Source: Octopus sinensis
Taxonomy: Eukaryota
NCBI RefSeq assembly: GCF_006345805.1
Contig: NC_042998.1
Location: forward strand, 120,652,001 to 120,716,000
Direction of reading: 5' to 3'
DNA length: 64,000 bases
In this document: in pieces, positions 2,824-63,317 of the stretch
Layout of the letters: each line of letters starts with the position of its first letter
Position numbering within the stretch: the stretch's first letter is position 1
Notes under the pieces: generated by a model
Seen by the model: the letters and a program-made list of their open reading frames with translations, nothing else
The model's database searches: none
Told to the model about the DNA's origin: nothing
Position numbers and translations under genes: made by a program

Positions 2824-4229
2824 GTTGGTATTGATATCAAACAGTAGAACAATACACAATGACAGGTATCTTGTGTGAAGGTTGAAAATGATGTAGTTTA
2901 GTGTGTGTTACCACTCCAGTTGAATCACAGTACCTGATATCATTGTGTGTCAGTTGCTATTGATATAGTTTATTGTAAATTACCACCAAAGATATACACA
3001 GTGATAGATACCATGTGTAGATTAGGATTAATATAGTTTACTGAGGGTTACCACTTCAAACATGACACTCTGCTAATCTCATTTGTGTAGGATGGAATAC
3101 AGTGTATTTAGTGAGATATCACCGTCCAACCCATGCTAGCATGGAGAACGGATGTTAAACGATGATGATGATTTAATGTTGAGAGAAATATTGGTTTCAA
3201 ATTTTGGCACCAGGCCAGCAATTTGGGGGGAAGAGATGAATTGATTACATTGACCACAGTGTTTTTGTTGACTCCAAAAAGATGCAAGGTAGAGTGGACC
3301 CCATGGCATTTGAACTTAGAATGTCAGAACAGAAGAAATGCCACTTAGCATTTATTCCAGCACAGTAACTATTATGTCAGCTCACAACCTTAATGTTGAG
3401 AGAAATCTTACCAATGAACTTTATTGAGCTTTTTTTTTTTTTCAATTCTGCTGTTGCTGTTGTGTAAATACTCCAGACTGACCCCTTATTCATTCTAGTG
3501 CCTGTTAGGGAAAGTTTGAAATACTAAATTATATGCTTCAGCTAGACTCAGAAGGTGAAGTGTAATCAGTGGTGGATGTAGTCAAAGATAAAATACAATG
3601 GTTTGATCAGATAATTTTCTGATTGTGTTAGGTTACAACAGATTCCCTTGAAGATAGTAACATAGTAAATTCCATTGTCTCGACCATGGTCGAACAATGA
3701 TGATGATGATGAAGATTTTTATTTGTATTTGATGCTAAAGTAGTAGATACCATAAAGTCTATAACTTGATAGGCCTGAAGCTACAAACTATTCTTGTAAC
3801 AGATGAACTGTATGATATGCATATCAGATGTGTGAAACATTGGATGTGATGGTAATGAATGGGATGGTAGAGAGTAAGATCTTGAATGTGACTCATTTGA
3901 TATGCAATATGAAACTTAAAAGATAAGTTAATAAGGGAAAATACACTGTTAGAACTACTTTAAATTTTTGTTCACTTGTTTGTAAGAGATGTTAGTATGA
4001 TAAATTGTCAAAATTCCAAGATGTATCAGGCCAGAGCTACTCTTACCTATATTGAAAAATAACATTATTCTCTCCCCAATATATTATACAAAAAGCACAT
4101 TTCAGGATTAAATTCTAAAGTTGGTTGTTCTATTAGTTTATTTATTTCATCTTTTCATGATTTTTAAAATTATTTTCTAGTTTAAAATATGTTTACTTCA
4201 ACTTATTGTTCCTTATCTCCTAATTTCAG

Positions 4230-4430
4230 AGGTCGATTTGCTGTAGTCAAAAGATGTGTCCAGAAATGCTCAGGACAGGAGCTGGCTGCCAAATGTATCA
4301 ACCGCAAGCACTTATCCAAGGAAGCTATTGAAACAGAGTTTAATACATTACAAAGTCTTTTTCACACGCATTTAGTTAAAGTGTTCGATTTATATGAGAC
4401 AAAAACAAATTATATCTTGCTAATGGAGAT
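4230..4430 (+). CDS. Trio/Kalirin kinase exon (GRFAVVKRC...LAAKC...YILLME)
   Basis: tttcAG acceptor and GTaagt donor; 201 nt. Encodes the Gly-rich loop, the AAK lysine and the alphaC glutamate. Confidence 0.95.
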
Positions 4431-5114
4431 GTAAGTCTATTTGTTATTTCAGCTCTTATTCGCCTTTCAATGAATTTTTCAATTGTTTTCCCCCAGAAGT
4501 CATCATTATCATTACCATCGACAACAACAACACAATAACATCATTTTATTGTTATGCACTGGGTACATCTGCCATACAATATGCAGTATGTCACCAGTCA
4601 TCTGATGTTCTGTATGATTAAATAGCAGAGACATTAGTACTAATTATCCTTCCTCCCATCACCCATTATCAGAGTAAACTTGGTGCATTTATTGTGCTGC
4701 TGTTTCTAGAGAGATTGTCTATCAGGACAACTTTAATTCAGAATAGCTGCTATCCTATATATGTTATAGCCACTGTGACTTGGAAGCCATATCTCTGTTG
4801 TATTTTGAGATAAAAGAATAATTTACATTGATAAATTTGTATGAATCAACTAGTTGTTAGATGGGCTTCTTTCAGTATTATCATTTCATTATCATTTTGG
4901 TTATAAAGAAAAAAACGATATACTATTAGCCCATAATTAGAGTGAAGGGGGAGAATAGAGATACACATGTTTAAAGATTATTTCATTGAAAAATGTAGTT
5001 CATAAAGAGAACATCGTTATTCTGAAATGTAAGTATGTAATGATATATATGTGTTTGTTTGCAGTGGAAAGAGTGTGTGTGTGTGTTTTTGTGTCTCTGC
5101 TAAACTATGTTTAA

Positions 5115-5844: not shown

Positions 5845-6035
5845 CTGACTGGCCCTCGTGCCGGTGGCACGTAAAAGTATCTGTTACACTCTCGGAGTGG
5901 TTGGCGTTAGGAAGAGCATCCAGCCATAGAAACCATGCAAATCAGACTAAAGTCTGGTGCAGCCACTCAGCTTGTCAGCCCTGGTCAAACCGTCCAACCC
6001 ATGCCAGCATGGAAAACAGACATTAAATGATGATA
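5845..6035 (+). mobile_element. RTE-type LINE 3' UTR/tail fragment
   Basis: ccggtggcacgtaaaa...ggcgttaggaagagcatccagc...ccgtccaacccatgccagcatggaaaacagacattaaatgatgat. The same tail follows RTE RT coding sequence at 43320-45200. Confidence 0.7.
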
Positions 6036-6230
6036 AGATATATATATATATATATAGATATAGATACACACACGTGTAAATATAATCAATCAGAAAGGAG
6101 CTCTATCTCACTCAAAATATCTTTTGATAAGCATAACAAATGCGCAACCGGTAAAAAGAACTTTCACCTAATTAAATACACTCTCCCTTACTTAAATTAT
6201 TTTGTCAGCATTTTCTTCATTTCCTTTTTT

Positions 6231-6278
<48 letters not shown>

Positions 6279-6436
6279 GTGTATTTTGAAATAATAGCAT
6301 GAAATTTAATCTCAAAAAATTCCTCACGAAAATATATGTGTTTGAAATAGTATTGTATTAAAAATATATGTAAATATATGAAATATGACAGTTGAAAAGT
6401 TTGGTAATTAATGCATCTTACGATTGTTTCGCAAAA

Positions 6437-6441
<5 letters not shown>

Positions 6442-6481
<40 letters not shown>

Positions 6482-6482
6482 C

Positions 6483-6520
<38 letters not shown>

Positions 6521-6639
6521 CTATACATATATATATATACTATATATATATATATATATTATATAATATATATACATATATAATATATATATATAATATA
6601 CATATATATATATATACACATATATTATATATATATACC

Positions 6640-6700
<61 letters not shown>

Positions 6701-6855
6701 TATATATATACACATATTATATATATATATATATATATATACAATATATATATATATATATATATACATATATACACATATATATATATATATACATATA
6801 TACACATATATATATATATATACACATATATATATATATACATATATATATATAC

Positions 6856-6953
<98 letters not shown>

Positions 6954-6954
6954 C

Positions 6955-6999
<45 letters not shown>

Positions 7000-7097
7000 C
7001 ATATAATATATATATATATTATATACATATATATATAATATATACATATATATAATATACATATATATATACCATATATATATATATATATACATAC

Positions 7098-7143
<46 letters not shown>

Positions 7144-7192
7144 TATATATATATACATATATATATATATACATATATATATCTATATATAT

Positions 7193-7224
<32 letters not shown>

Positions 7225-7262
7225 CATATTATATATATATATACATACATATATATATATAC

Positions 7263-7355
<93 letters not shown>

Positions 7356-7356
7356 C

Positions 7357-7401
<45 letters not shown>

Positions 7402-7461
7402 CATAATATATATATATATATACATATATATATTATATATACATATATATATATATATATA
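6442..7461. repeat. About 1 kb interrupted (TA)n/(TACA) microsatellite array
   Basis: Seen directly; accounts for the YI-repeat ORFs. Confidence 0.98.
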
Positions 7462-7462
7462 T

Positions 7463-9297
7463 GCCCCGACCTGGGACGTAGTCAGTCCTGTGCATACCTT
7501 CCTTCTTGTGACACTTATGAAGACCTGTTGAGGCAAGTGAAAATCAAATCAAATCAAAACAAATCAAAATAGATGAACATCAGTGGAATTGTATTCTTTG
7601 TGGTACCAGTGCCGGTGGCACACAAGAAAACCACCCAAACGTGGCCGTAACCAGTACCGCATCGACTGGCCTCCGTGCTGTGGGCACAACAAACACCATC
7701 CGATCGTGGCCGTTCGCCAGCCTCATCTGGCACCTGTGCCGGTGGCACATAAAGACACCATCCGAAGACCCGGCGACGTAGTCAGTCCACCTGTGCATAC
7801 CTTCCCTCTTATGACACTTGTGAAGACCTGTTGAGGCAAGTGTGTGACACTTGTGAAGACCTGTTGAGGCAAGTGAAAATCAAAAATCAAAAATCAAAAA
7901 TCAAACCAAATCAAAATAGATGAATATCAATGGAATTTGTATCTTTGTGGTTCCAGTACCGGTGGCACACAAGAAAACCATCCGAAGTGGCCGTAGCTGG
8001 TACCGCATCGACTGGCCTCCGTGCTGTGGGCACAACAAACACCATCTGATCGTGGCCGTTCGCCAGCCTCACCTGGCACCTGTGTCGGTGGCACATAAAA
8101 ACACCATCCAAAGACCCGGCGACGTAGTCAGTCCACCTGTGCATACCTTCCCTCTTATGACACTTGTGAAGACCTGTTGAGGCAGAGGCAAGTGTGTGAC
8201 ACTTGTGAAGACCTGTTGAGGCAGAGGCAAGTGTGTGTGACACTTGTGGAGACCTGTTGAGGCAAGTGTGTGACACGCGTGACACTTGTGAAGACCTGTT
8301 GAGGCAAGTGAAAATCAAACCAAATCAAAATAGATGAACATCAATGGAATTTGTATCTTTGTGGTTCCAGTACCGGTGGCACACAAGGACACGCGTGACA
8401 CTTGTGAAGACCTGTTGAGGCAAGTGAAAATCAAACCAAAATCAAACCAAATCAAAATAGATGAACATCAATGGAATTTGTATCTTTGTGGTTCCAGTAC
8501 CGGTGGCACACAAGAAAACCATCCGATCGTGGCCGTTCGCCAGCCACATCTGGCACCTGTGTCGGTGGCACATAAAGACACCATCCGAAGACCCGGCGAC
8601 GTAGACAGTCCACCTGTGCATACCTTCCTTCTTGTGACACTTGTGAAGACCTGTTGAGGCAAGTGACACTTGTGAAGACCTGTTGAGGCAAGTGAAAATC
8701 AAATCAAATCAAAACAAATCAAAATAGATGAGCATAAATGGAATTTGTATCTTTGTGGTACCAGTGCCGGTGGCACACAAGAAAATCATCCGAACGTGGC
8801 CGTAGCCAGTACCGCATAGACTGGCCTCCGTGCTTTGGGGACGTAACAAACACCATCCGATCGTGGCCGTCCGCCAGCCTCATCTGGCACCTGTGTCGGT
8901 GGCCACATAAAAACACCATCCGAGCGTGGCCGTCTGCCAGCCTCGTCTGGCACCTGCCAGCCTCATCTGGCACCTGTGTCGGTGGCACATAAAAACACCA
9001 TCCGAGCGTGGCCGTCTGCCAGCCTCGTCTGGCACCTGTGTCGGTGGCACATAAAAACACCATCCGAGCGTGGCCGTTCGCCAGCCTCGTCTGGCACCTG
9101 TGTCGGTGGCACATAAAATCACCCACTACACTCTCGGAGTGGTTGGCGTTAGGAAGGGCATCCAGCTGTAGAAACACTGCCAGATCTGACTGGCCTGGTG
9201 CAGCCTTCGGGCTCCCCAGACCCCAGTTGAACCGTCCAACCCATGCTAGCATGGAAAACGGACGCTAAATGATGATGATGATGATGATGATGATGAT
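7463..9297 (+). mobile_element. Concatemer of RTE 3' UTR modules ending in one RTE terminus with a (TGA)n tail
   Basis: About four 300-450 bp units built from gacacttgtgaagacctgttgaggcaagt, (AAATC)n and about 62-bp gccagcct...gtcggtggcacataaaaacaccatcc repeats. Terminal segment at 9120-9297. Confidence 0.8.
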
Positions 9298-9315
9298 ATA
9301 TATATATATATACAT

Positions 9316-9349
<34 letters not shown>

Positions 9350-9366
9350 CATATATATATACATAC

Positions 9367-9397
<31 letters not shown>

Positions 9398-9410
9398 CAT
9401 ATATATATAC

Positions 9411-9500
<90 letters not shown>

Positions 9501-9815
9501 GTAGGCGCAATGGCCCAGTGGTTAGGGCAGCGGACTCGTGGTTGTAGGATCGCGGTTTCGATCCCCAGACTGGGTGTTGTGAGTGTTTATTGAGTGAAAG
9601 CACCTAAAGCTCCACGAGGCTCCAACAGGGGGTGGGGGGTGGCGATGCCTGCTGTACTCTTTCGTCACAACTTCCTCTCACTCTTTCTTCTGTTGGCCTT
9701 CTCGCTTAGCCAACGAGGTGACGCCATTTGAAGGCTAAAACAATGCAAAGCACATTGTGACCAGCGATGTGTAGCAACATCTGATAGCCTTGTTGGTTAC
9801 GGTGATCATGGTGAT
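9501..9815 (+). mobile_element. tRNA-derived SINE
   Basis: A box TGGCCCAGTGG (9511-9521) and B box GGTTTCGATCCC (from 9554), followed by a non-tRNA body. Sits at the edge of a (TA)n tract. Confidence 0.8.
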
Positions 9816-10513: not shown

Positions 10514-10652
10514 CATTCCTTCTGGTCGTTTGTTTGAATTTATCTGTATCCGAGGACATTTCGATGAACTACAAGCTGCTGAGTATGTCCAACAAATACT
10601 GGATGCCATTCAGTATTTGCACAACTGTCGGATTGCTCATTTGGACATTAAG
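10514..10652 (+). CDS. Trio/Kalirin kinase exon (IPSGRLFEF...YLHNCRIAHLDIK)
   Basis: ttggcAG acceptor and GTttgt donor; 139 nt. Phase-compatible with both neighbours. Encodes the catalytic loop HLDIK. Confidence 0.95.
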
Positions 10653-11339
10653 GTTTGTTTCTGGATTTTCCTTTTTTATCTTTTATTTGTTTCAGTTATT
10701 TGACTGCAGCCTTGCTGTGGCACCATCTTGAAGGAGTTAGTCAAACAAATCAGCTGCAGTCCTTTTCTTCTTTTTTTTTAGTTTGATATATATTCTATTG
10801 GCCCCTTTTGCTGAACTGTTAAGTTACAGGGACATAAACAAACCAACACAGTTGCCATGTGGTAGTGGGTGGGAAAACACGGGGACACACACATACAATG
10901 AACTTCCACAGTTTCTATCTACTAAATATCTCATAAGGCATTGGTTTGCTTGGCACTGTAGTAGAAGACATTTGCCCAAGCCATCACACAGTGGAACTGA
11001 AGTTGAAACTATGAGTTTCTTAACCACACATCTATGCATTTTGTTTTTGTTTTGTTTTTTTATTGTGACTTACTCAGATAAAGGACAAGGATAACACCTT
11101 ATTGTGATCATTCGTCTTTTGGTTTCCTGTAGCTTTGCTCTCTTTTACAAACCCAGTGAACATATATTTCCTATTTCAAAGAAATTCAAACAATAGATAT
11201 AAGACCCAAGTTAAAAAGATTCTCAACAATTCAACTTCTCTGGTTGACATTAAGATCCCCACCCCCATCAGGGGCCTTAACTCTCACATTTTAGAGCTTC
11301 ATGACCGTCATTTTTCAGAAGCAAAATCTTTTTAACAGG

Positions 11340-11562
11340 TTCAATAAGACTGGAATTTTGGAATATGTGCATAAAAATCAGTATTATGGGATACATGTGG
11401 CACGATTACAATTTTTTTAGGGTGTGTAAAGAGGGAAATAACCCTCATCTGCAATTTTGATGAAATTCGAAACAGATATTCCAGTTCATTACAGAAAATA
11501 TAACAGAAAAGTCTAATTCTTCAATTGCATGTAACACAGGCAACGCCAGGTATTTCTACTAG
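11340..11562 (+). mobile_element. Helitron-like 3' end
   Basis: GGC-aac-GCC hairpin (11539-11547), then CTAG (11559-11562) abutting T of a (TA)n run. The 5' boundary is uncertain. Confidence 0.5.
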
Positions 11563-11574
11563 TATATATATATA

Positions 11575-12330
11575 TATCATCATCATCATCATCATCATTT
11601 AACGTCTGCTTTCCATGCTAGCATGGGTTGAACGATTTGACTGAGGTCTGGCGAACCAGACTCTAATCTGATCTGGCAGAGTTTCTACAGCTGGATGCCC
11701 TTCCTAATGCCAATCGTTCCTAGAGTGTAGTGGGTGCTTTTATGTGCCACCAGCACAGGGGCCAGTTTGGTGGTACTGGCAATGGCCACGCCCAAATAGT
11801 GCTTTTTATGTGCCACCTGCACAGGAGCCAGTCCAGTGGCACTGGCAACAACCTCGCTCAAATGTTTCATGTGCCACCAGCACAAGTGCTAGTAAGGCGA
11901 TGTGGTAATGATCATGCTCAAATGGTGTGTTTAATGTGCCATTGGCACGAAGGCCAGCTTGTTGCTCTGGCAATGATCTCACTCATGTGGTACTCTTAGT
12001 GCTCCACTAGCAACATACCTTTCCTTCTTGGGACACAGAACTCCACTTGCGAAGACCCGTTGAGGCAAGTGAAAATCAAAATCAAAATCAAACCAAATCA
12101 AATCAGATATCAGAAAGCAGAACCAAAATCGAAGTCGATCAACATCAATGGAAATTGCAGCTGTGATACCAGTGCCGGTGACAAGTAAGCGAACCATCCG
12201 ACCGTGGCCGTTGCCAGCACTGCCCCGACTGGCCTCCATGCCGGTGGCACGTAAAAAGCACCATCCATTCGTGGCCGTTGCCAGCTTCGCCTGGCCCTCG
12301 TGCCGGTGGCACATAGCACCATCCGTTCAG
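11575..12330. mobile_element. Two RTE 3' UTR fragments in opposite orientation (minus about 11575-11990, plus about 12020-12330)
   Basis: Starts with (CAT)n and the reverse complement of the RTE terminus. The right part has gaagacccgttgaggcaagtgaaaatc(aaatc)n in + orientation. Confidence 0.7.
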
Positions 12331-13089
12331 ATGTATGTATAAGTCGACTGGCTACATACCAGGTAGAGGCCACGGGTTATGGTCTCACTAGTCTTGCCAG
12401 GTCTTCTCACGCGCAGCATACACACACACACACATACAAAGATAAATTGATAGATACAACTGAGTGGGCAAACATGAATATGAGACACAGCCTAGTGCTT
12501 TTTTATGTTGATAAGCCTGGTACTTATTCTATTAGTTTGTTCTTGTGAAACCAGTAATTTATGGAGATGTAAATAAATGAACAGCAGTTTTGAAGCAGTG
12601 ATGAGGGCGAAACACAGAGACAAAGAGACACACATACACTTGCATATATACATATATATACGAATGATTTGTTTCAGTTCCTGTCTACGAAATCCATATA
12701 TATATATATATACACAAAGATAAATTGATAGATACAACTGAGTGGGCAAACAAAAATATGAGGCACTGCCTAGTGCTTTTTTTATTTTGATAAGCCTGGT
12801 ACTTATTCTATCATTTTCTTCTTGTGAAACCAGTAAGTTATAGGGATGTAAATAAACGAACACCAGTCGTGAAGCAGTGATGAGGGAGAAACACAAAGAC
12901 ACACACATAGACTTAAATATATACATACATATATATACAATTGATTTCTTTCAGTTTCTGTCTCCAAAATCTACTGACAAGGCTTTGGTTGGTCTGAGGC
13001 TATAGCAGAAGACATGCCAAGTTACCACACAGCCACACCTGCACATGTGTGTGTGTGTGTATGGGTGTATATATGTATGCATGTATATA

Positions 13090-13127
<38 letters not shown>

Positions 13128-13405
13128 TCTACACATACATCTATATCTATCAAAATATATCTGTAAATATACATGTATATATATATATACAGCTATACAT
13201 ATACATGTATATATATATACAGCTATACATATACATGTATATATATATATATACAGCTATACATATGCATGTATATATATATACAGCTATACATATACAT
13301 GTATATATATACAGCTAAACATATACGTGTATACATATACATCTATATATGTGACCTCGTGTGTACCGTTGGCAATTTTTTTTCCTGTGTCTTCCCTTCT
13401 CCTAT

Positions 13406-13440
13406 GTTTCCGACGAAGAGCTCCGCTCGAAACGTTAATC
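13406..13440 (+). ncRNA. Minimal type I hammerhead-like motif, copy 1
   Basis: GUUU-CCGACGA-A-GAGC(UCC)GCUC-GAA-ACGU-U-AAUC. Perfect stem II and palindromic stem III ACGU; predicted cleavage after GUU (13436). Core carries U4C. Confidence 0.7.
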
Positions 13441-13520
13441 CCTCCTTCTTTCCTGAGCGTCCAATAATACTATGTTTGTTCCACGTCCTCACGTTGTGTT
13501 TTTTTGTGCTTTCTACATCC

Positions 13521-13555
<35 letters not shown>

Positions 13556-13845
13556 ATATATATATGCATCTACACATACATCTATATCTATCAAAATATA
13601 TCTGTAAATATACATGTATATATATATATACAGCTATACATATACATGTATATATATATACAGCTATACATATACATGTAATATATATATATACAGCTAT
13701 ACATATGCATGTATATATATATACAGCTATACATATACATGTATATATATACAGCTAAACATATACGTGTATACATATACATCTATATATGTGACCTCGT
13801 GTGTACCGTTGGCAATTTTTTTTCCTGTGTCTTCCCTTCTCCTAT

Positions 13846-13880
13846 GTTTCCGACGAAGAGCTCCGCTCGAAACGTTAATC
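13846..13880 (+). ncRNA. Minimal type I hammerhead-like motif, copy 2
   Basis: Identical to 13406-13440; predicted cleavage after 13876. Confidence 0.7.
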
Positions 13881-13958
13881 CCTCCTTCTTTCCTGAGCGT
13901 CCAATAATACTATGTTTGTTCCACGTCCTCACGTTGTGTTTTTTTGTGCTTTCTACAT

Positions 13959-14000
<42 letters not shown>

Positions 14001-14832
14001 CATGTAAATTTAAATTTAAAATAATAAGGTTGAAAAATTGAATATTAATTTGATTAATATGAATTGAAAACCAGTGGTGTAGCATATAAGACCATAGCGG
14101 ATCTTCTAGCAAAATAGATGTCCACTGTTGATGGTTCATCCCTCTTATATAATAGTTTCACTTTATTAGTTTCAGTATTAAAGTGAAAGCATGTGACAGT
14201 ACAATAGAGAGATGTTTTTGTTTCACTTTTAACATGTAATACTGAAATAGTGGAGAAGATATGATATTGCTGTGGACTCGCCCTTTTTTTTTTTTTCTTT
14301 TCATTTTTTAGTTTCAGCTCAGAGCTGCGGCCATGCTGATGCACGGCAAGAAGTTAAAAAAATTTTTTGCCCATGACACTACATGGACCCTGTGTAAGGC
14401 ATGTGTAAAATTTTAATGAAATTGGTTGTATAGTTCTCAAGTTTTAGATATCCACACAGACAGACAGACACACACACACATTCTCAGTTTTATATATATA
14501 TAGATTCACTCTTATTTTTTCCCCATAAAATAAAATATCCCATACATATGATACAACCTTTAAATTGCATAAATTTGCATGAATATTCCGCAGTTATGTG
14601 AGAGGTGATATAAAAAAAAACTTAATTCAGTTAAAAAAGATACACTTTTCACTATTCAGTCACCACCACTACCACCATCATCTCTCTCTCCCTCCTCCTT
14701 CCTCCCTCTCCTCCTCTTATCTCTCTCCACCTTTCTGTAACCTCACTATCAGAATATCACTCCTTTGCTAAAATTATATTTTTAACTCTTCTCCTACCTT
14801 CAACTAACATTTTTAACCACATAATAAATATT

Positions 14833-15015
14833 TATTTCTTTACTACCCACAAGGAGCTAAACACAGAGGGGTCAAACAAGGACAGACAAACGGATTAAGT
14901 CGATTACATCGATCCCAGTGCGTAACTGGTACTTAATTTATCAACCCCGAAAGGATGAAAGGCAAAGCCGACCTCGGCAAAGTCGACCTTGGCAAAGTCG
15001 ACCTCGGCAAAGTCG
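14833..15015 (+). mobile_element. SINE-like repeat fragment with a 4x 15-bp terminal tandem repeat
   Basis: Core ggtacttaatttatcaaccccgaaaggatgaaaggcaaag, with related copies near 3200-3400, 45790-45980 and 56710-56930. Four copies of ggcaaagtcgacctc at 14961-15020. Flanking direct repeat accacataataaatatt. Confidence 0.6.
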
Positions 15016-15784
15016 ACCACATAATAAATATTACGTTACCCTTACTTCACATCATGGCCACTTCTCTCTCTCTCACTTTTTCTCCCATTTTCTGTCTCTC
15101 TCTTCACCTTATCCTCTTTTTCTCTTTCCTTTTTCTTCCTCCTCTCTTTCCTTTCAATTACATTCTCTCTACCTCACATGGATGCTTCTCTCTCCTACTT
15201 TTTCTCCTTCCTTTTTCTTTAGTCACATAAAAACATTACCAACAGAGACTAAGTAATGCAATGACAAACAGAATTATTATAAGAAAGTTACAAAACCAGT
15301 TAAAGTAACAACAGTGCATAACTAATATATTTTATTACTACATTATTTCTAATTGGTTTCATAATCTTTCATGTGAAAAAGACACAGTCACACATAAACA
15401 TACACATTATTCAAAAGGAAGTTAGCTGTCAGTAACCTCAAAGATTGTGTAACAGTAGTCAGTGTACATGTGTGTGTGTGTGTGTGTATGCACGCATGAG
15501 TGCATGTGTCTGTGTGTGTGTGTGCACGCATGAGTGCATGTGTCTGTGTGTGTGTGATCATTGAATAAACCATTTTAATGGCACTCCTATACTAGGTACA
15601 TCTGATCAGGTTCTATACCTGAATGAACTCAGAACAATAAAACAACTCACATTTCAAACAATATAATCTTTCTTTATCTTTTTCTCTACCACTCACCTTA
15701 TAAACATGCTCTTCTCCCTCTCTCTTCTATCCAAATTTACTTTCCAGAGTACATATACCAAGCCTAATTATCATTTTACATAGG

Positions 15785-16040
15785 TGTGTGACTTAGTGGT
15801 TAGGGTGTCAGCATGATGATTGTAAGTTTGTGGTTTCGATTCCTGGACCAGGCGATACATTGTGTTCTTGTGTTCTTGAGCAAAACACTTCATTTCACGT
15901 TGCTCCTGTCCACTCAGCTGGCAAAAATGAGTAACGCTGCGATGGACTGGCGTCCCGTCCAGCTGGGGAACACATACGCCATTGAAACCAGGAAACCGAG
16001 CCCATGAGCTTGGCTAGGCTTTAAAAGGGCACATTTATTT
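15785..16040 (+). mobile_element. tRNA-derived SINE
   Basis: A-box-like tgacttagtgg and B box ggtttcgattcc. Body contains ttgagcaaaacacttcatttc and gcgatggactggcgtcccgtccag. Confidence 0.7.
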
Positions 16041-16179
16041 TTTTTAGGAAATCAAAACATCAGAGATAAAACCAAAATAAACTCTACTTACTATGATGAT
16101 GGCTAGCCAGATGAAAATTCTGTTGTAAAAGTATAATATATTCATAAATTATTCTTTAACAATGACTTTGAAGTTTAAG

Positions 16180-17170
16180 ACAGGTAAGCCATCCTGTAGG
16201 AACTACTATATGTTGATGACCTTGCTCTTCTAACGGAATCTGTTATAGAATTGAAGAAGAAATTCCAGGTATGGAAGCAAAACCTGGAATCAAAGGGCCT
16301 TCAAGTTAATCTAGTGAAGACCAAGTTAGTCTAGTGTTATTAGTGTTATTCAAGTTAATCTAGTGTTATTAGCTAGAAAGTGAATAAGATTCTTTGTCAA
16401 GGTAAATGATCCTGCATGTAGACAAGATGTTGGAAGAAATTCCATTTGTTGTGCTCAGTGCAAGCAACAGATACATAAGAGGTGCAGTGGAATCACAGGT
16501 AGGTTAACAGAGAAAGTCGTCTTTGTATGCAGCAGATGCACAGGAGCAATGAGTTCTAAGGACACATTGGAATTAGACTCTCTCAAATGCCCCAGAATGC
16601 TTCCTTGAGGTTGTATACAGTTTCTATTACCTAGATGGCATAATTAGCAGTGGTAGAGGATGTTCTGAAAGTATTGTTGTTAGAATAAGAATAGGATGGT
16701 TGAAGCTCAGAGAGCTATTACCTCTGTTGGCAACAAAAGGTAGATTGTATGATGCTTGTGTATGAACTGCTATGCTCCATGGTAGCGAGACATGGGCTCT
16801 GAATACAGACAGCATGTGTTGACTTGAGAGAAAATGATGCCAATATTCTTCAATGGATGTGCAACATCAGTGTGCCTATACGACAAAGTGAAAATGTGCT
16901 GAGAGAAAAGTTGAACACAAGAGGAATCAGATGCAGAATGAGAGAGAAGACTGTGTTGGTTTGGACATGTGATGCCTATGAATGAAAACAGCTGTTTACA
17001 AAAATGCCAATCATTTGAAGTAGATGGAACCTTTGAAAAAGGGTGACCTAGGGAGACCTGGGTTGAAGTAGTGGACGCCAATCTCATGATGTTGGATCTC
17101 ACAGAGGAGATGACAATGGACTTGAGAGTCTGGCAATGTGAGGTTCTTGAAAAGACCTGTCCACTTCAGT
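16180..17170 (+). mobile_element. Decayed RTE-clade LINE, RT C-terminal half
   Basis: ELLYVDDLALLTES...FQVWKQNLESKGLQVNLVKT, a Cys-rich insert, then RIRIGWLKLRELLPLL and LHGSETW. Contains frameshifts and stops. Confidence 0.85.
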
Positions 17171-18195
17171 GAAACTATTCTGGAAGTGCTGTGTGCACAT
17201 TTAACATTAATTTTTGCACACCCTACCTTAATAAACCAAACTACATCTCCTCTTCTCCTTTTTCTCTCCTCTTCTTTTTGCACTATGCTTATCTCTCCCT
17301 CCCCACTCCTGCAGCCCAAATCTGTCCCCACCTACTATATCAATGCTATTCTTTTGTTCCCTCTACATACTTGTGTTTGACCAGTCACTGCATCCCTCCT
17401 CCCCTTTTTTCTACATTCCTTACTCCCTGGGCAATCCTCTACTATTTCATTTATATTCACATCCTTGTATTTTGAGAGTATGCTCTGGTACTACCATCCC
17501 TCTTGCACTCTCTCTATCTCTCACTCTTTCTCTTACTCTCTCTCTCTCACTGGAACTATGTATTTCCTCTACAGCAAGATATCTGTTTCTATCCCTCTGT
17601 CATACTCTAACACTTTATCACTTAACACAGTGTGACCTCCTTCATTACCACCAGTCACTTTCAAAGGATCTTTGTCTTGCAAGTTATTTGGTGACCTCGC
17701 CAGTAAAAAACACCCAATCCACTCTATAAAGTGGTTGGCATTAGGAAGGGCATCTAGCCATAAAAAAACCATGCCAAAGCAGACAGTGGAGCTTGGCGTA
17801 GTCCTCAGGCTTGCCAGCTCCTATCAAACCATCCAACCCATGCCAGCATAGAAGAGGAACATTAAACGATGATGATGATATACATAGATAGATAATACAT
17901 ACAACACTTGATAAATGATCATTTCACTTTCAATCTGTTGACAGTACTCTATGCATTTGTGTTAGTATTTTATTTATGTGTCATATATACATATCTTATT
18001 GTATGTGTCTATTATGTGTATGGAAATATATTTCACTCCACAGAATGTGCTTTCTTCATTGTATTCCAGAATGTATCATTTACAATGGTGTGTGTTTATA
18101 CACATATAGGTATTTGCAAGCATGTGTATTTACACCCACACATAAACATAACACATTTGCATCTCAAATCAGGGATTGTTTTGTTTGTATTTCAG

Positions 18196-18368
18196 CCTGA
18201 AAACATTGTGGTTGACTGTGGCCTAAATTCCGGTGTCAAATTAATAGACTTTGGTGATGCTCGTCACATCTACAATAACTACTACATCCACCCTGTGGTA
18301 GGTAACCCTGAATTTATGGCACCAGAGCTGGTCAGTGGAACTCCTGTAGGGCTACTCACTGATATCTG
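18196..18368 (+). CDS. Trio/Kalirin kinase exon (PENIVV...KLIDFGDA...GNPEFMAPE...TDIW)
   Basis: tttcAG acceptor and GTaaga donor; 173 nt. Encodes the DFG and APE motifs. Confidence 0.95.
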
Positions 18369-20268
18369 GTAAGATTTTTCTGTAACTTCTTAATACATCA
18401 GAAATATGAAAGTGTTTCTAGTCATTCTTGAAAATAATTTATATAATTTTAGTAAGGGGTTTCTCCAAATGTTTACCAGTTTGCTCACAGTAATCATTAT
18501 TATTATTATGTAGAAACAGGCATGCACACACACACATGCTTGTTTGTGTGTGTGTGTATTTCTGTATCATTTTTGTAAATTGTGTATCCGATTTAATAGA
18601 GTATTTATTAAACATTGAGTATAAATACATTACTTTGGACAGTTAAAAACTGTCAAGTGTTAATGAAATCTCAATGAAGATCGAAACTTCATTGCTTGTG
18701 TTGACAGTGGCTGTATCAGTACTGGTGGTCACTAAGGTAGTATTTGAGGTAATGTCAGTTCTAGCCTCAGCAAACACAGTAGTTGTGGTAGTAGCAGTGG
18801 TGGGATTGTTACTAATGTTAATAGTGGTATAAATAGTAGTAGAGTAGAGGTAATATCAGCAGCAACCTTGGAAGTAATAGTAACATCTGTGGTAATGGTC
18901 GTGATGGCAGATGGCCTATGTCAGCCAATGGCTTAACTCCCATTGACCTTACTTTTAAGCTTCTATCTTCAAATAAAAATGGCTTTTTTGGTCTGCAAAT
19001 TATTAATATTGTACTCCTTCGTTAGGATGATTAGAGAATATATTATTGTTGTTACTTTTCAAGATGTGTTTCTGGGTGGAAGTTACATGTGTTGTCAAAT
19101 GCTCATTCAACAAGTTATGAAGAGATGAAATCACACTGCCAGTACAGTATTCAATGTATTTGGCACGTTGTAGTTGGTGCACTAGACATGTGCAATAGCT
19201 GTTAGTTCATGTCACAGATGGCGGGGTTGGCCAGCATGCATGAGTGCAGGTCACTGTTGACTTGGTTGCTAGATAGGCATTTCTGAAAGGATGGTCTCAA
19301 GTGGGCTAAACATATGCTGAGTCTTTCTCTGTAGATAACAATAGTTGATAGTTGCCTTTCTCTTGAAGTGTGATATCTTCAGGAAGCAGGTGATAATGTA
19401 TTTGCTTTCTTGATTTGGGACCCTAAAGTCAGTTGATAAAAAAGGCCAGATACCTATTGATTTGTAGTGTCCTGAGGAAATATGTATTATTCCACCTGTC
19501 TTGGATATAGATGATGTATAATAGATAGATATATATCTTATCATCATCATTTAATGTCTGTTTTCCAAGCTAGCATGAGCTGGACAGTTCAACAGGAGCT
19601 AGTAAGCCAGAGGACTGCATCAAGCTCCACTGTCTCTTTTGGCATGGTTTTTACAGCTGGACGCCCTTCCTAACACCTACAGAGGGGACTGGGTGCTTTT
19701 TACATGGTACCAGCACTGGGGAGGTCTGTTTGGCATAGTTTTTATATGCCATCCACTGTACAGAGCACGCTGGATATTTTTCTACATGGTTACTAGAGGT
19801 AGGATGACAGAGGACCAAGACACCTGGTGGTTTGCTATGCTTGAAAAGACACATCAAACTAAGTAAAAGCATGGTTTCCCTTGCTTTCAGGCTCATTTCT
19901 TGCAACCTTCTCCAGCTAAACATTCCCTAATCTTGTGGGCTCATAAGTGCTGGTGTCATGTAAAAAGATAAGAAGCACCCAGTACACTCTGTAAAATGGT
20001 TTGCATTAGGAAGGGCACCCGGCTGTAGAAACCCATGCCAAATCAGAATTGCAGTCTGGTGCAGTTCCCCAGCTTGCCATCTCTGATCAAACTGTCCAGC
20101 TTATGCCAGCATGGACAGCAGACATTAAATGATGATAATATATATATATAAATAATATGCTACAACATATCATATATCACATTAAAAAGTAACTAGCTTA
20201 TTAAACTTTTGTAGAGGCCTATTCTTATCACATTACCATATTATATGATACAATGTTTTTTTTTACAG

Positions 20269-20448
20269 GAGTATGGGCGTAATACTCTATGTCTTATTAA
20301 GTGGAGTTTCACCTTTTCTGGATGAAAGTCAGGAAGAGACCTGTTCAAATATTGTTCGTAACGACTATAGTTTTCCCGATGAATATTTTGCTGGAATATC
20401 ACCTGAAGCAAAGGATCTTGCCCGGTCAATGTTGATGGAAGATATGAA
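20269..20448 (+). CDS. Trio/Kalirin kinase exon (SMGVILYVLLSGVSPFLDESQEETC...EDM)
   Basis: ttttacAG acceptor and GTaagt donor; 180 nt. LSGVSPFLDES-x-EETC is characteristic of Trio/Kalirin kinases. Confidence 0.95.
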
Positions 20449-20668
20449 GTAAGTGTGTGTGTGTGTGTGAGTGGCAGTATCTGAAGAGTGGTTGATTATG
20501 TATATGATCTCCAAACATACTGCTCTCAAAAACTACATCCATTCTTGGGACCTGCCAACTCTAATGGTTTAACCTTATTTATTAGCATTTTTTTCACATT
20601 CCCACCTTCGTTCATACTTCCATTTATTCAAACTTCAGTTGTTGTTTGGTCCTGGGTCAACTCTGATC

Positions 20669-43319: not shown

Positions 43320-45200
43320 ATACAGTCATACCCAATGACTGGTGTAGCAGTACCATAATTAACTGCTACAAAGGTAAAGGTAATGCTTTAGATAGAAATA
43401 ACTACAGGGGTATCAAATTGCTGGATCAGGTGATGAAGGTCACGGAGAGGGTCATAGCCTAACTGAATAGGGAGAGAGTTAACCTAGATGAGATGCAGTT
43501 TGGTTTTGTTCCAGGCAGAAGCACCACTGATGCTATATCTCTGGTAAGACAACTGCAGGAGAAATATTGAGCCAAAGATAAACCTCTGTACTTGGCTTTT
43601 GTTGATTTGGAGAAGTCCTTTGACAGGGTCCCCTGATCCTTTATCTGGTGGTCAATGTGGAAACTAGGGATAGACGAATGGTTAGTGAGAGCTGTACAGG
43701 GATGCTGTCAGTAAGGTGAGGGTTGGCAACGAGTATAGTCAAGAAGTAGGGGTTCACCAAGGATCAGTCCTCAGCCCCTTCTTATTCCTCATAGTCCTCC
43801 AGGCAATAACAGAAGAATTCAAGAATTCTCTATGCTGATGACCTTACTCTTATAACTGAATCACAACCAGAACTAGAGAAGAAATTTCAGGTGTGGAAGC
43901 AAGGTTTAGAATCGAATGACCTTAGAGTCAATGTAGCAAAAACCAAAGTCCTAGTAAGTCCTCTTCAGGTAAATGGCTCTGCTCAATCTGTAGAAAAGGT
44001 GGAGGTAGAAGCTCCATAAGATGTACCCAGTGTAAGCTATGGACACATAAGAGGTGCAGTAATATCAAAGGATGCACAGGGGTAATAAACACTGAAGATG
44101 TTCAGAAGACAGATTCCATCACATGCCAGTGGAATAAATTCTAATTTCAGCTTCCTAGGTGACCAAGTCTGTAGTGGGGGTGGATGCTCTGAGAGAGTTG
44201 CCACTGGAATAAAAGTAGCCTGGGCAAAGTTCAGAAAGCTCCTACCTCTGCTGGAAACAAGGGCCTCTCACTCAGAGTGAAAAGTAGACTGTATGATGCA
44301 TGTGTGCAAACTGCCATGCTACACGGCAATGAAACATGGGCCATGACTGTTGAGGAGATATGTAGGCTTGAAAGGAATGAAGCTAGTATGCTTTGCTGAA
44401 TGTGTAATGTCAGTGTGCATGCACAACAGAGTGTAAGCATGATGGACATAAGTAGCATCAGATGTGATGTACAAGAGAGACGACTGCACTGGTATGGTCA
44501 TGTGCTGCATATGGATGAGAGCTGTGTGAAGAAGCATTACACCCTAACAGTAGAAGGAATCTGTGGAAGAGGAAGACATGGGATGAGGTGGTGAAGCATG
44601 ACCTTCAAACATTGGGCCTCACAGAGGCAATGACCTTTGGAGATATGCTGTGATTGAGAAGACCCAGCAAGTAAAGTAATATCATAACTGTAGCTTACAC
44701 CAGTATCACATAACCAGCCCATTTAAAAGTATCCATGAATCATTGGGCGATTCGCTGAACTTGAGAAGACTTATTGAGTCAAGTAAAATCAAAATCAAAA
44801 TCAAAATCAAATCAAGATTGAAATCAAAATGGAAATTGTAGTTGTGGCTGATGCCAGTGCGGCCTGACTAGCACCCGTGCTGGTGGGATGTAATAAGCAC
44901 CACTTAAGCATGGGTCAATGCCAGTGCCATCTGGCTGGCTTCCTATGATGGTAGCACATAAAAAGCACCATCCAAACATGGTTGATGCCAGTGCCGCCTG
45001 ACTGGCTCCTGTGCCAGTGAAACTTAAATATCACCCACTACACCCTCAGAGTGGTTGGCGTTAGGAAGGGCATCCAGCTGTAGAAACTCTCCCAGATCAG
45101 ATTGGAGCTTGGTGCAGCCATCTGGTTCGCCAGTCCTCAGTCAAATCATCCAACCCATGCTAGCATGGAAAGCGGACGTTAAAAGATGATGATGATGATG
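43320..45200 (+). mobile_element. 5'-truncated decayed RTE LINE: RT, PHD-like insert, 3' UTR and (GAT)n tail
   Basis: [18 protein letters not shown]...NYRGIKLLDQVMKV, QFGFVPGRSTTDAI, LAFVDLEKSFDRVP, GVHQGSVLSP, YADD. Then the 3' UTR ending ggacgttaaaagatgatgatg. Confidence 0.9.
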
Positions 45201-51959: not shown

Positions 51960-53830
<1,871 letters not shown>

Positions 53831-53852
53831 ATATATATATATAAATATATGC

Positions 53853-54600
53853 ATACAGGATGCGATGGGTAAATTGTTGCCATTTTATATTTTTAATTTT
53901 GCACATGCACGTTTGTTTTTGATTTTGTCGACTACACAGTATAGTAGGGTCAGTTGGGCAACGTCTGTGAGAAAAAACGGCACCATGACGCAGTTCACTC
54001 AACCAGAAATTTGGAAAAGCATGCTGTACTGCTTGGCATTTGTACCGGAAGCTCCAATATGAACATGTACTGAGAGTGATAAAAATCAAGCATGTAGTCA
54101 ACATCATGGTGTTTGGAGTGATCACTAGTGATGGCAATGTTATGCTTTCATCCATCTTCCCACATGGCCTCAGACTCAACATAGAGGCATACATCAAGTG
54201 CCTGGAAGTTGTAGTGCTGCTCCGGGTGAAGAGAGTGGCTGCTGGAAGACCCTATGTCTTGCAACAGGACTCTGTACCTTGCCACATATGCAGGAGAACA
54301 CAGTTATGGTTGCCAGACAATTTCTGCAATCACATCACCCCTAACTGCAACCCCCTTGATTATTATGTGTGGAGCGTAGTTGAGAGAGAGAGAGACCATC
54401 AAAATTCCTTGTAACACCAAAGACAAACTGAAGGCAACGATTATGGTAGCAAATTAAACAAGAAGACCATCCAGAAGAGTTGCAGGAAATTCTAAAGTCT
54501 TCTGGAGGCTGTGGTTGAAGTTAATGGCGATTTTATTGAATAAATTTACTCTTTAGTATTTCAAGATATTTTTATGTAATTTTGGTAAATATGCCTGTTA
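53853..54600 (+). mobile_element. Tc1/mariner transposase fragment (maT/DD37D-like)
   Basis: IMVFGVITSDG...YIKCLEVVVL...GRPYVLQQDSVPCH...NPLDYYVWSVVE contains the second and third catalytic motif regions. Internal deletions present. Subfamily call is tentative. Confidence 0.8.
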
Positions 54601-61954: not shown

Positions 61955-62886
61955 CAAGGTCTGATTAATAAGTATCGAGACTGTTGCCATAGTAACAAAG
62001 CTAAAGCACACAGAGTGAAGCCACTTGGCAAAGATTGACCTTGAACTCTGCTGTACTTGTGCACTAAGTTATAACATTCTAGCCTACTACTGCTGTTTAC
62101 AGCAGTGCTTGGAAGAAAAGTGTGTAGCACATGATCATCACACTGAATATGACAGAGAAAGTTATCATGGCAATACCTGCTCAGAGGCCTAGGCAAAGTT
62201 GCAGAAAGTCTATGGAGACGTGTGTATGAGCCACACACAGGTGTACGACTGGTTCAGACGTTTCCAAGATGATTGAAAAAATGTCGATATTGATGTATGT
62301 TCTGGGAGACCCACAACCAGCAGACTGAGAAAAACATCGTAGATGTGCATGCAGATGTGAGGGAAAGTTGTCAAATCACCAGCTGTGAGTTATCAGAGGA
62401 TGTGCTGATTAGTCACAATTCAGCTCAGTCAATTATCACAGAAGATTTGGGTATGAGATGCGTGTCTGCCAAGTTTGTGCCAAAACTGCTTTCAGCTGAC
62501 CAAAAGACACTCAGGTTTCAGTTGCACAAGATATTGATTGTCTCAAGAATGATAAAAACTCTTTGAAAACTTTGTGTAGACCTCTGAGTAGATATCACCA
62601 AGCTTTTGGCAAAATGTGATGCAGATTCTCTGCTCACCTTCCTCTGTCATGGTCAATGTGATGATCACACGCTACACACCTTCCTTCCAAGCACTACTGT
62701 AAACAGAGGAAGTGAGCTAGAACATTAAAACTTAGTGTGCATGCACAGTGAAGTTCAAGGTCAATCCAAGTGACTTCACTCTGCATACTTTAGTTTCATT
62801 ACTATGGCATACTTTACATACTTTAGTATGTGCATACTTTACATACTCTGCATACTTTAGTTTCGTTGTTTATTGATCAGACCATG
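61955..62886 (+). mobile_element. Non-autonomous mariner-type element with long inverted ends
   Basis: TA on both flanks; termini caaggtctgattaataa / ttattgatcagaccatg; about 200-bp subterminal inverted similarity. Transposase N-terminal remnant: QVYDWFRRFQD...SGRP and ITEDLGMRCVSAKFVPKLLSADQK. Confidence 0.82.
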
Positions 62887-62944
62887 TACATTGGACTGCT
62901 GAACTCTACACAGTTTTTCTCTCTCCATTTCTTTCCTCTTATTC

Positions 62945-62980
62945 CTTTCTGTTGAAGAGTGTAGGCTCAAAACATAAAAG
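62945..62980 (+). ncRNA. Degenerate hammerhead-like motif
   Basis: CUUU-CUGUUGA-A-GAGU(GUAG)GCUC-AAA-ACAU-A-AAAG. Stems I and II pair; G12 and the stem III CpG appear mutated. Confidence 0.45.
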
Positions 62981-63146
62981 ACTTTTGTAATTTTCCTGAG
63001 CTTTAAACTAATACCCCTGCTTGTTTTTGTACACCTGTCTTCGTCTTTTGTTTATCTGTAAATTTGAAACTATATGTGACCTCGTGTGTACCGTTGGCGA
63101 TTTCTTTTCCTCTGTCTTCCCTTCTCGGGATCTTTCCTCCTCCTAT

Positions 63147-63181
63147 GTTTCCGACGAAGAGCTCCGCTCGAAACGTTAAAC
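63147..63181 (+). ncRNA. Minimal type I hammerhead-like motif (same family as 13406 and 13846)
   Basis: GUUU-CCGACGA-A-GAGC(UCC)GCUC-GAA-ACGU-U-AAAC, with a perfect 4-bp stem I; predicted cleavage after 63177. Confidence 0.72.
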
Positions 63182-63277
63182 CCTCCTTCTTCCCTTCTTT
63201 CCTGAGCGTCCAATAATACTATATTTGTTCCACGTCCTCGCGTTGTTGTGTTTTTTTGTGTTTTCTTGTTTGGATTA

Positions 63278-63317
<40 letters not shown>

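Follow-up and report, generated by a model that had tools for sequence, protein, structure and literature searches.

A tandem pair of hammerhead-like motifs in a Trio-like kinase intron, probably a locally duplicated Penelope-derived repeat

The window analysed here, a 64,000-nucleotide stretch of Octopus sinensis DNA, contains part of a Trio-like kinase gene on its + strand. An exon for the N lobe of the kinase (4228-4431) is followed by an exon that ends in AHLDIK and then gt (10524-10652), by one that begins after cag and runs from PENIVV through DFG to APE (18196-18369), and by a further kinase exon at 20249-20449 (GVILYVLLSGVSPFLDESQEETCSNIVRNDYSFPDEYFAGISPEAKDLARSMLMEDMK). The best named protein matches of the spliced fragment are to Haliotis 'triple functional domain protein-like' (73% identity), and the fragment also matches unnamed kinase-domain proteins of Lottia and Biomphalaria; these matches identify it as a mollusc Trio-type kinase domain. 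The second and third of these exons are separated by a phase 0 intron of 7.5 kb (10653-18195, + strand). The initial annotation had placed a tandem pair of hammerhead ribozymes in the sense strand of this intron, between the catalytic-loop exon and the DFG exon, and the exon boundaries at 10652 and 18196 confirm that location. The preceding intron, upstream of the catalytic-loop exon, is marked at 6000-9550 by a very large AT-rich microsatellite block (GC 0.21 at 6-8 kb), after which GC-richer tandem repeats (GC 0.46 at 8-10 kb) give long repetitive ORFs.

The 27-nucleotide string CCGACGAAGAGCTCCGCTCGAAACGTT occurs at 13410-13436 and again at 13850-13876, both times on the + strand and with 440 nucleotides from start to start, just as had been claimed. 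A third identical motif lies far downstream on the same strand, at 63151-63177, within a dispersed repeat, and is followed there by AAAC. Read as a hammerhead, copy 1 has its predicted scissile bond after 13436 and copy 2 its putative cleavage site after 13876. The 5' core, C3 C4 G5 A6 C7 G8 A9 (CCGACGA), departs from the consensus box C3 U4 G5 A6 N7 G8 A9 at position 4, which is C in three of three copies. An unpaired extra A, at 13417 in copy 1, stands between A9 and G10.1, and helix II, GAGC-UCC-GCUC, consists of 4 bp closed by G10.1-C11.1. The 3' side agrees with the consensus at 13429-13436, with G12 A13 A14, the A15.1-U16.1 pair and U17 (H17, not G). The segment A15.1 C15.2 G16.2 U16.1 (ACGU) is palindromic and has no helix III hairpin; a helix III formed by a dimer would have 4 bp. 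The helix I strands of copy 1 are 13406-13409 (GUUU) and 13437-13440 (AAUC), which in copies 1 and 2 give A-U, A-U, a U-U mismatch and C-G, that is, 2 bp, a mismatch and 1 bp; copy 3 has 4 contiguous bp (GUUU/AAAC). Stem II with its UCC loop, the ACGU after GAA, the GUU site, C4 and the U-U mismatch in helix I had all been described correctly, and three things had been overlooked: the extra A, the third motif at 63151-63177, and the origin of the 440-nucleotide spacing in a tandem duplication.

Among known systems, the closest kind is the minimal hammerhead of Penelope-like elements (PLEs), and to judge from its sequence the motif would either work like that kind or be a decayed version of it. 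According to Cervera & de la Pena 2014 (PMC4209133), the minimal hammerheads in PLE pseudo-LTRs are of type I, have no hairpin on helix III and are believed to function as dimers. What 'consistently emerged' among them was a nucleotide at 9/10.1, a G10.1-C11.1 pair, a palindromic 15.2-16.2 and a short helix I along with a long helix II, typically of 6-8 bp (PMC4209133). The octopus motif has the type I topology, the self-complementary A15.1-C15.2-G16.2-U16.1 and no helix III hairpin, together with the unpaired nucleotide at A9/G10.1, the G10.1-C11.1 pair and a helix I that is short, with 4 bp in copy 3. It differs from the PLE motifs in having C4 for U4, a helix II of 4 bp as against 6-8 bp and, in the intronic copies, a helix I broken by U-U; no PLE ORF adjoins it either, and the link to PLEs is one that we infer. 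Of the earlier assignment to minimal type I hammerheads, the architecture of the PLE minimal hammerhead thus stands, whereas the core is non-consensus (C4) and helix II is short.

Using a descriptor of PLE-type minimal-hammerhead features that allowed one core mismatch, and that was written after the candidate had been seen, we found these three sites only in the real window, none of them with a perfect core. In 77 Mb simulated by a first-order Markov model of the window, the same descriptor found two one-mismatch sites and no perfect-core site. The resulting chance rate of about 0.003 per 64-kb window argues against pure chance, and is a generous estimate in that the descriptor was post hoc and many windows were scanned. 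Against Rfam, the whole window gave no hammerhead or other ribozyme match at the gathering score. The search with Infernal that the initial annotation had proposed as a check was negative even at E<=10, with no hammerhead in regions 13000-14100, 13380-13460, 63120-63200 and 62850-63285, 81-nucleotide searches included. Some matches of the mir-297/mir-466 type, far below the gathering score, were dismissed as (TA/CA)n artefacts. Rfam hammerhead models are built on canonical hammerheads and are expected to score PLE minimal hammerheads without a helix III hairpin poorly. By the base at position 4 and by Rfam alike, the motif fails as a strict member of the hammerhead class.

These results also bear on the possibility of a chance resemblance, in which the carrier would be some other short retroelement or SINE whose conserved imperfect hairpin (AUGUUUC, a 7-nucleotide bulge, GAGC-UCC-GCUC and GAAACGU) mimics a hammerhead with one core error. 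Such a mimic would have no need of the extra nucleotide at 9/10.1 or of the palindromic 15.2-16.2, which are traits of PLE minimal hammerheads, and would turn up at a rate of only about 0.003 per window. Yet the core departs from the consensus at U4, the Rfam hammerhead models give no match even at E<=10, many windows were scanned with a descriptor made after seeing the candidate, and some 0.026 chance matches per Mb-strand would amount to the order of 100 in a Gb-sized genome.

All three motifs lie in copies of one dispersed repeat. Copy 1 (13346-13520, + strand, about 175 bp) has TATA before it and (TA)n after it, copy 2 (13786-13960, + strand) is its exact duplicate, and copy 3B (63071-63266, + strand, about 196 bp) again has TATA before and (TA)n after. 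Copy 3B differs from copy 1 by 7 substitutions in 164 aligned columns and by indels of 16, 8 and 3 nucleotides. At both loci the similarity begins at TGTGACCTCGTG right after TATA, and ends in a T-rich stretch and then (TA)n. Directly upstream of 3B, in head-to-tail arrangement, is an old, decayed monomer of a related repeat, 3A (62874-63066, + strand), which has about 50% identity in the aligned columns and a local alignment score of 56, compared with a shuffle mean of 27.8 (sd 4.1). Its version of the motif, CTGTTGAAGAGTGTAGGCTCAAAACAT, has lost A6 and G12, while its stem II is intact but for a C-to-U change, which leaves a U-G pair.

The CpG observed/expected ratio is 1.26-1.38 in the young copies (1.26 in copy 1), 0.17 in monomer 3A and 0.27 in the whole window, and such high values in a CpG-depleted window mark the young copies as recent insertions. 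As CCGACGA contains two CpGs, which decay would remove rather than create, C4 does not look like a product of decay; being common to two independent insertions as well, it points to a source element that already had C4. The family is represented here by one decayed copy and two independent young ones whose motif is identical. Selection on the motif is not apparent, since an identical run of 51 nucleotides is expected from 7 substitutions in 164 columns (P=0.53); we therefore rejected the idea that the motif is under selection, its identity being no greater than the low overall divergence predicts. The lack of any sign of selection also speaks for a chance resemblance, although a mere mimic would account less readily for a repeat that, like a PLE, has (TA)n as its target and forms a partial tandem, or for the survival of stem II in decayed monomer 3A by way of the U-G pair.

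Further copies were sought through spurious ORF calls in protein libraries, using a 57-aa element peptide and residues 62-118 of a 146-aa ORF, and by a full HMMER scan of 1.84 billion representatives; neither found any. A metagenome scan for GAAGAGCTCCGCTCGAAAC returned 17 loci, and upstream of none of the 17 was there a CYGAYGA box or the remainder of the motif; with a GC content of 49-64% these are probably unrelated DNA, probably bacterial. A tRNA-derived SINE head was likewise rejected, as ARAGORN finds no tRNA-like sequence in the window. No ORF for a PLE reverse transcriptase or GIY-YIG endonuclease adjoins any copy of the repeat. The window does contain other mobile elements. Two regions, 16200-17170 (+) and 43400-44650 (+), are fragments of one kind of non-LTR retrotransposon, each encoding a reverse transcriptase (Pfam RVT_1) and then a PHD-type zinc finger; the intron of the motif pair contains the first, 2.3 kb downstream of the pair. 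With their PHD finger, these reverse transcriptase fragments near the repeat copies look LINE-like. ORFs at 53989-54411 (+) and 62294-62563 (+) appear by eye to be pieces of Tc1/mariner transposase (the DDE region and the N-terminal HTH region, respectively), and Pfam gave no match to either at E<=0.01. The second of them is just upstream of repeat copy 3.

The spacing of the intronic pair is explained by its surroundings. TRF reports a 440-bp tandem duplication at 13080-14004, with 2.1 copies and 98% matches, and the 440 nucleotides between the motifs are the period of this duplication. Direct alignment of the two copies, about 13094-13540 and about 13534-13980, shows 0 substitutions and two 1-nucleotide indels in (TA)n; a 300-nucleotide block is 100% identical between the units. 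Both breakpoints lie in (TA)n tracts. The 440-bp unit is composed of about 190 bp of mobile element and about 250 bp of local microsatellite-like DNA. The 63-kb copy lacks the latter, so the mobile unit measures about 190 bp and not 440 bp. Breakpoints in (TA)n, together with some 250 bp that are not mobile, indicate a local duplication or an assembly artefact and not a multimer made by the element. The pair likely arose by local duplication of the element along with neighbouring microsatellite DNA, for which unequal exchange or slippage would be the simplest route. The 'retrozyme-like' tandem of the initial annotation is consequently not supported, as the 440-bp unit is not the mobile unit and its breakpoints fall in (TA)n.

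The same alignment could be had if the genome contained a single copy and the assembly had written the 440-bp unit twice in a (TA)n-rich region. One-nucleotide indels in (TA)n are a typical error class of long-read assemblies, and two such indels, with 0 substitutions, are the only differences between the two units, whose breakpoints are in low-complexity DNA. The outcome would look no different if (TA)n tracts had very recently undergone unequal exchange, however; tandem duplications of about 440 bp are common beside microsatellites, and the window shows no sign of misassembly. We regard an assembly artefact as improbable, and as it concerns the duplication only, it is compatible with every other reading of the locus.

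Tandem structure is found elsewhere in the window as well. Next to the motif pair is a 279-bp tandem repeat (12436-12971, 1.9 copies, 86% matches), followed at 12940-13040 by what may be an Octopus tRNA-derived SINE in reverse orientation. At about 12607, in the 279-bp repeat, GTGATGAGGGCGAAAC resembles a hammerhead core; there is no room for stem II and the repeat is a different one, so we dismissed it as a chance lookalike. Sequence at 52064-52282 recurs in direct orientation at 53046-53213, and that at 52605-52935 at 53536-53869, a duplication whose period is about 930-980 bp and whose ORF translations are the same in each copy.

To get a wider perspective on the repeat, we compared it with several described families. 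PLEs undergo 5' truncation and form head-to-tail partial tandems, their hammerhead motifs are found close to the 3' end, and certain clades target (TA)n (PMC8557442); these habits can all be seen in the octopus repeat as well. The carrier of the octopus motif is, like theirs, a dispersed and often truncated repeat that forms head-to-tail partial tandems, and the TATA and (TA)n flanks of two independent insertions, together with the 3A/3B partial tandem, are consistent with a PLE-like element. Naiad-type PLEs, which occur in molluscs including cephalopods, have no canonical hammerheads, though in some of these elements there are strings resembling a hammerhead core (Craig et al. 2021, PMC8557442). 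The octopus repeat resembles these elements and their non-autonomous derivatives in its (TA)n preference, 5' truncation and partial tandems (PMC8557442); an assignment to Naiad, made from such described habits, would be speculative.

The metazoan non-LTR retrozymes (Cervera & de la Pena 2020, PMC7229834; 10.64898/2026.07.22.740005) are short, low-GC tandem repeats in which every unit has a hammerhead-like motif of type I, and so is the octopus pair, whose 440-bp unit falls in their published monomer range of 150-450 bp (PMC7229834; 10.64898/2026.07.22.740005). They too are likely related to PLEs and are commonly found in introns. In Xenopus, about 43% of the copies of retrozymes overlap an intron (Li et al. 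2026 preprint, 10.64898/2026.07.22.740005), and the intronic location of the motif pair is thus not special. Unlike non-LTR retrozymes, the octopus locus has two units only, produced by local duplication, shares just about 190 bp with the dispersed copy, and has a non-canonical hammerhead; because the tandem unit is not the mobile unit, it does not belong among them. The amniote hammerheads HH9 and HH10, in introns of RECK and C10orf118, have a canonical form, are ultraconserved and present in single copy, and have been shown by experiment to be active (Perreault et al. 2011, PMC3088659). The octopus pair is like these in that a hammerhead-type motif occupies the sense strand of an intron in a host gene; unlike them, it belongs to a transposon copy, has a variant core and shows no sign of being conserved.

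Whether the motif could cleave is best judged from its fold and from the behaviour of related ribozymes. Without helix III, the hammerhead fold is predicted at -0.7 kcal/mol for copies 1 and 2 and -4.6 kcal/mol for copy 3, compared with -7.1 and -7.2 kcal/mol for a hairpin in which GUUUC is paired with GAAAC. A double hammerhead formed by the two intronic copies comes to +0.5 kcal/mol, as against -14.2 kcal/mol for two competing hairpins, and when enforced in the 496-nucleotide tandem transcript it lies 25 kcal/mol above the minimum-free-energy fold; these are nearest-neighbour energies, which ignore tertiary contacts and protein cofactors. The motif region has no unusual structural stability (z -0.1 to -1.2), and on these z-scores we rejected an unusually stable structured RNA. 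That the minimum-free-energy fold is the hairpin and not the hammerhead is a further point for a chance resemblance, which, with the PLE-type traits and the habits of the repeat set against it, we consider unlikely but worth keeping in view.

Turning to activity, the U4C change 'considerably decreases activity in vitro', although one viroid U4C hammerhead works in vivo (PMC3088659), and the octopus motif is without loops able to give the tertiary contacts that are thought to offset core defects. The initial annotation had stated that the minimal hammerheads of both PLEs and retrozymes cleave efficiently as dimers. This is true of amphibian retrozyme hammerheads, which have a weak helix III and are cleaved efficiently as dimers (PMC7229834); for PLE motifs it is overstated, as even those with a consensus core have low activity in dimer and trimer constructs, and mostly at non-physiological Mg2+ (Cervera & de la Pena 2014, PMC4209133). 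Given C4, the weak helices and the unfavourable predicted fold, the octopus motif is probably inactive.

The contrary proposal is that the pair forms a double hammerhead during transcription, cuts at 13436 and 13876, and frees a 440-nucleotide RNA that may circularise and affect splicing. Both copies are indeed in the sense strand of the intron, the self-complementary ACGU makes a nested double-hammerhead topology possible, a U4C hammerhead is active enough in vivo for viroid infectivity (PMC3088659), and amphibian retrozymes show that a weak helix III can suffice for good cleavage as dimers (PMC7229834). The pair would nonetheless have to cleave with C4 and no compensating loop-loop tertiary contacts, a helix I of 2 bp, a mismatch and 1 bp, and a helix III of 4 bp, from a fold at +0.5 versus -14.2 kcal/mol with a 25 kcal/mol penalty in the full transcript, while a self-complementary, TA-rich tract of 250 nucleotides between the motifs would compete for folding and PLE minimal hammerheads with perfect cores are themselves weakly active as dimers or trimers. 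The claim of a dimer-competent pair that cuts the intron is not supported, given C4, the interrupted helix I, the 4-bp helix III and the predicted energies, and we consider such an active pair very improbable. Fuller still is the idea that a recently active mollusc retroelement family spreads with a C4 hammerhead and that the intronic pair self-cleaves in vivo as a double hammerhead with the help of host factors, cutting the intron of the Trio pre-mRNA and yielding a 440-nucleotide linear or circular RNA; to this we would give the slimmest of chances.

The most plausible explanation, to which we assign a probability of roughly 60%, is that a young PLE-derived repeat that targets TA and carries a variant, probably inactive minimal hammerhead has been duplicated locally. 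The element would be a young, CpG-rich, non-autonomous retroelement of about 175-195 bp that inserts into (TA)n microsatellites, most likely the 5'-truncated 3' end (a piece of a pseudo-LTR) or a short derivative of a Penelope-like element, and it would carry a PLE-type minimal type I hammerhead motif in which C4 was already present at the source. One copy would have inserted in the sense strand of the 7.5-kb Trio-like intron, and that copy and about 250 bp of neighbouring microsatellite-like DNA would later have been duplicated once, likely by unequal exchange or replication slippage between the flanking (TA)n tracts. The host pre-mRNA would then include both motifs, each expected to be dead or nearly so, and the pair would be a neutral passenger of the intron. 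Counting against this explanation are the lack of an adjacent PLE reverse transcriptase or GIY-YIG ORF, the 4-bp helix II, a motif identity no greater than the overall divergence predicts, and the viroid in which a U4C hammerhead works in vivo, a precedent by which some residual activity would be conceivable.

Were the pair active after all, dimeric minimal hammerheads would be shown to tolerate U4C, and a transposon ribozyme to be able to act on a host kinase transcript. More generally, tandem hammerhead pairs can come from ordinary microsatellite-mediated duplication, and the content of the repeat unit should be checked before such a pair is called a retrozyme. If the explanation favoured here is correct, the octopus motif would add a further degenerate copy to the PLE-type minimal hammerheads catalogued by the thousand in invertebrates, with no expected effect on the host kinase gene. 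A young family whose source already carried C4 would agree with the view of Craig et al. 2021 (PMC8557442) that PLE-type elements can multiply even if their hammerhead is not of the consensus kind.
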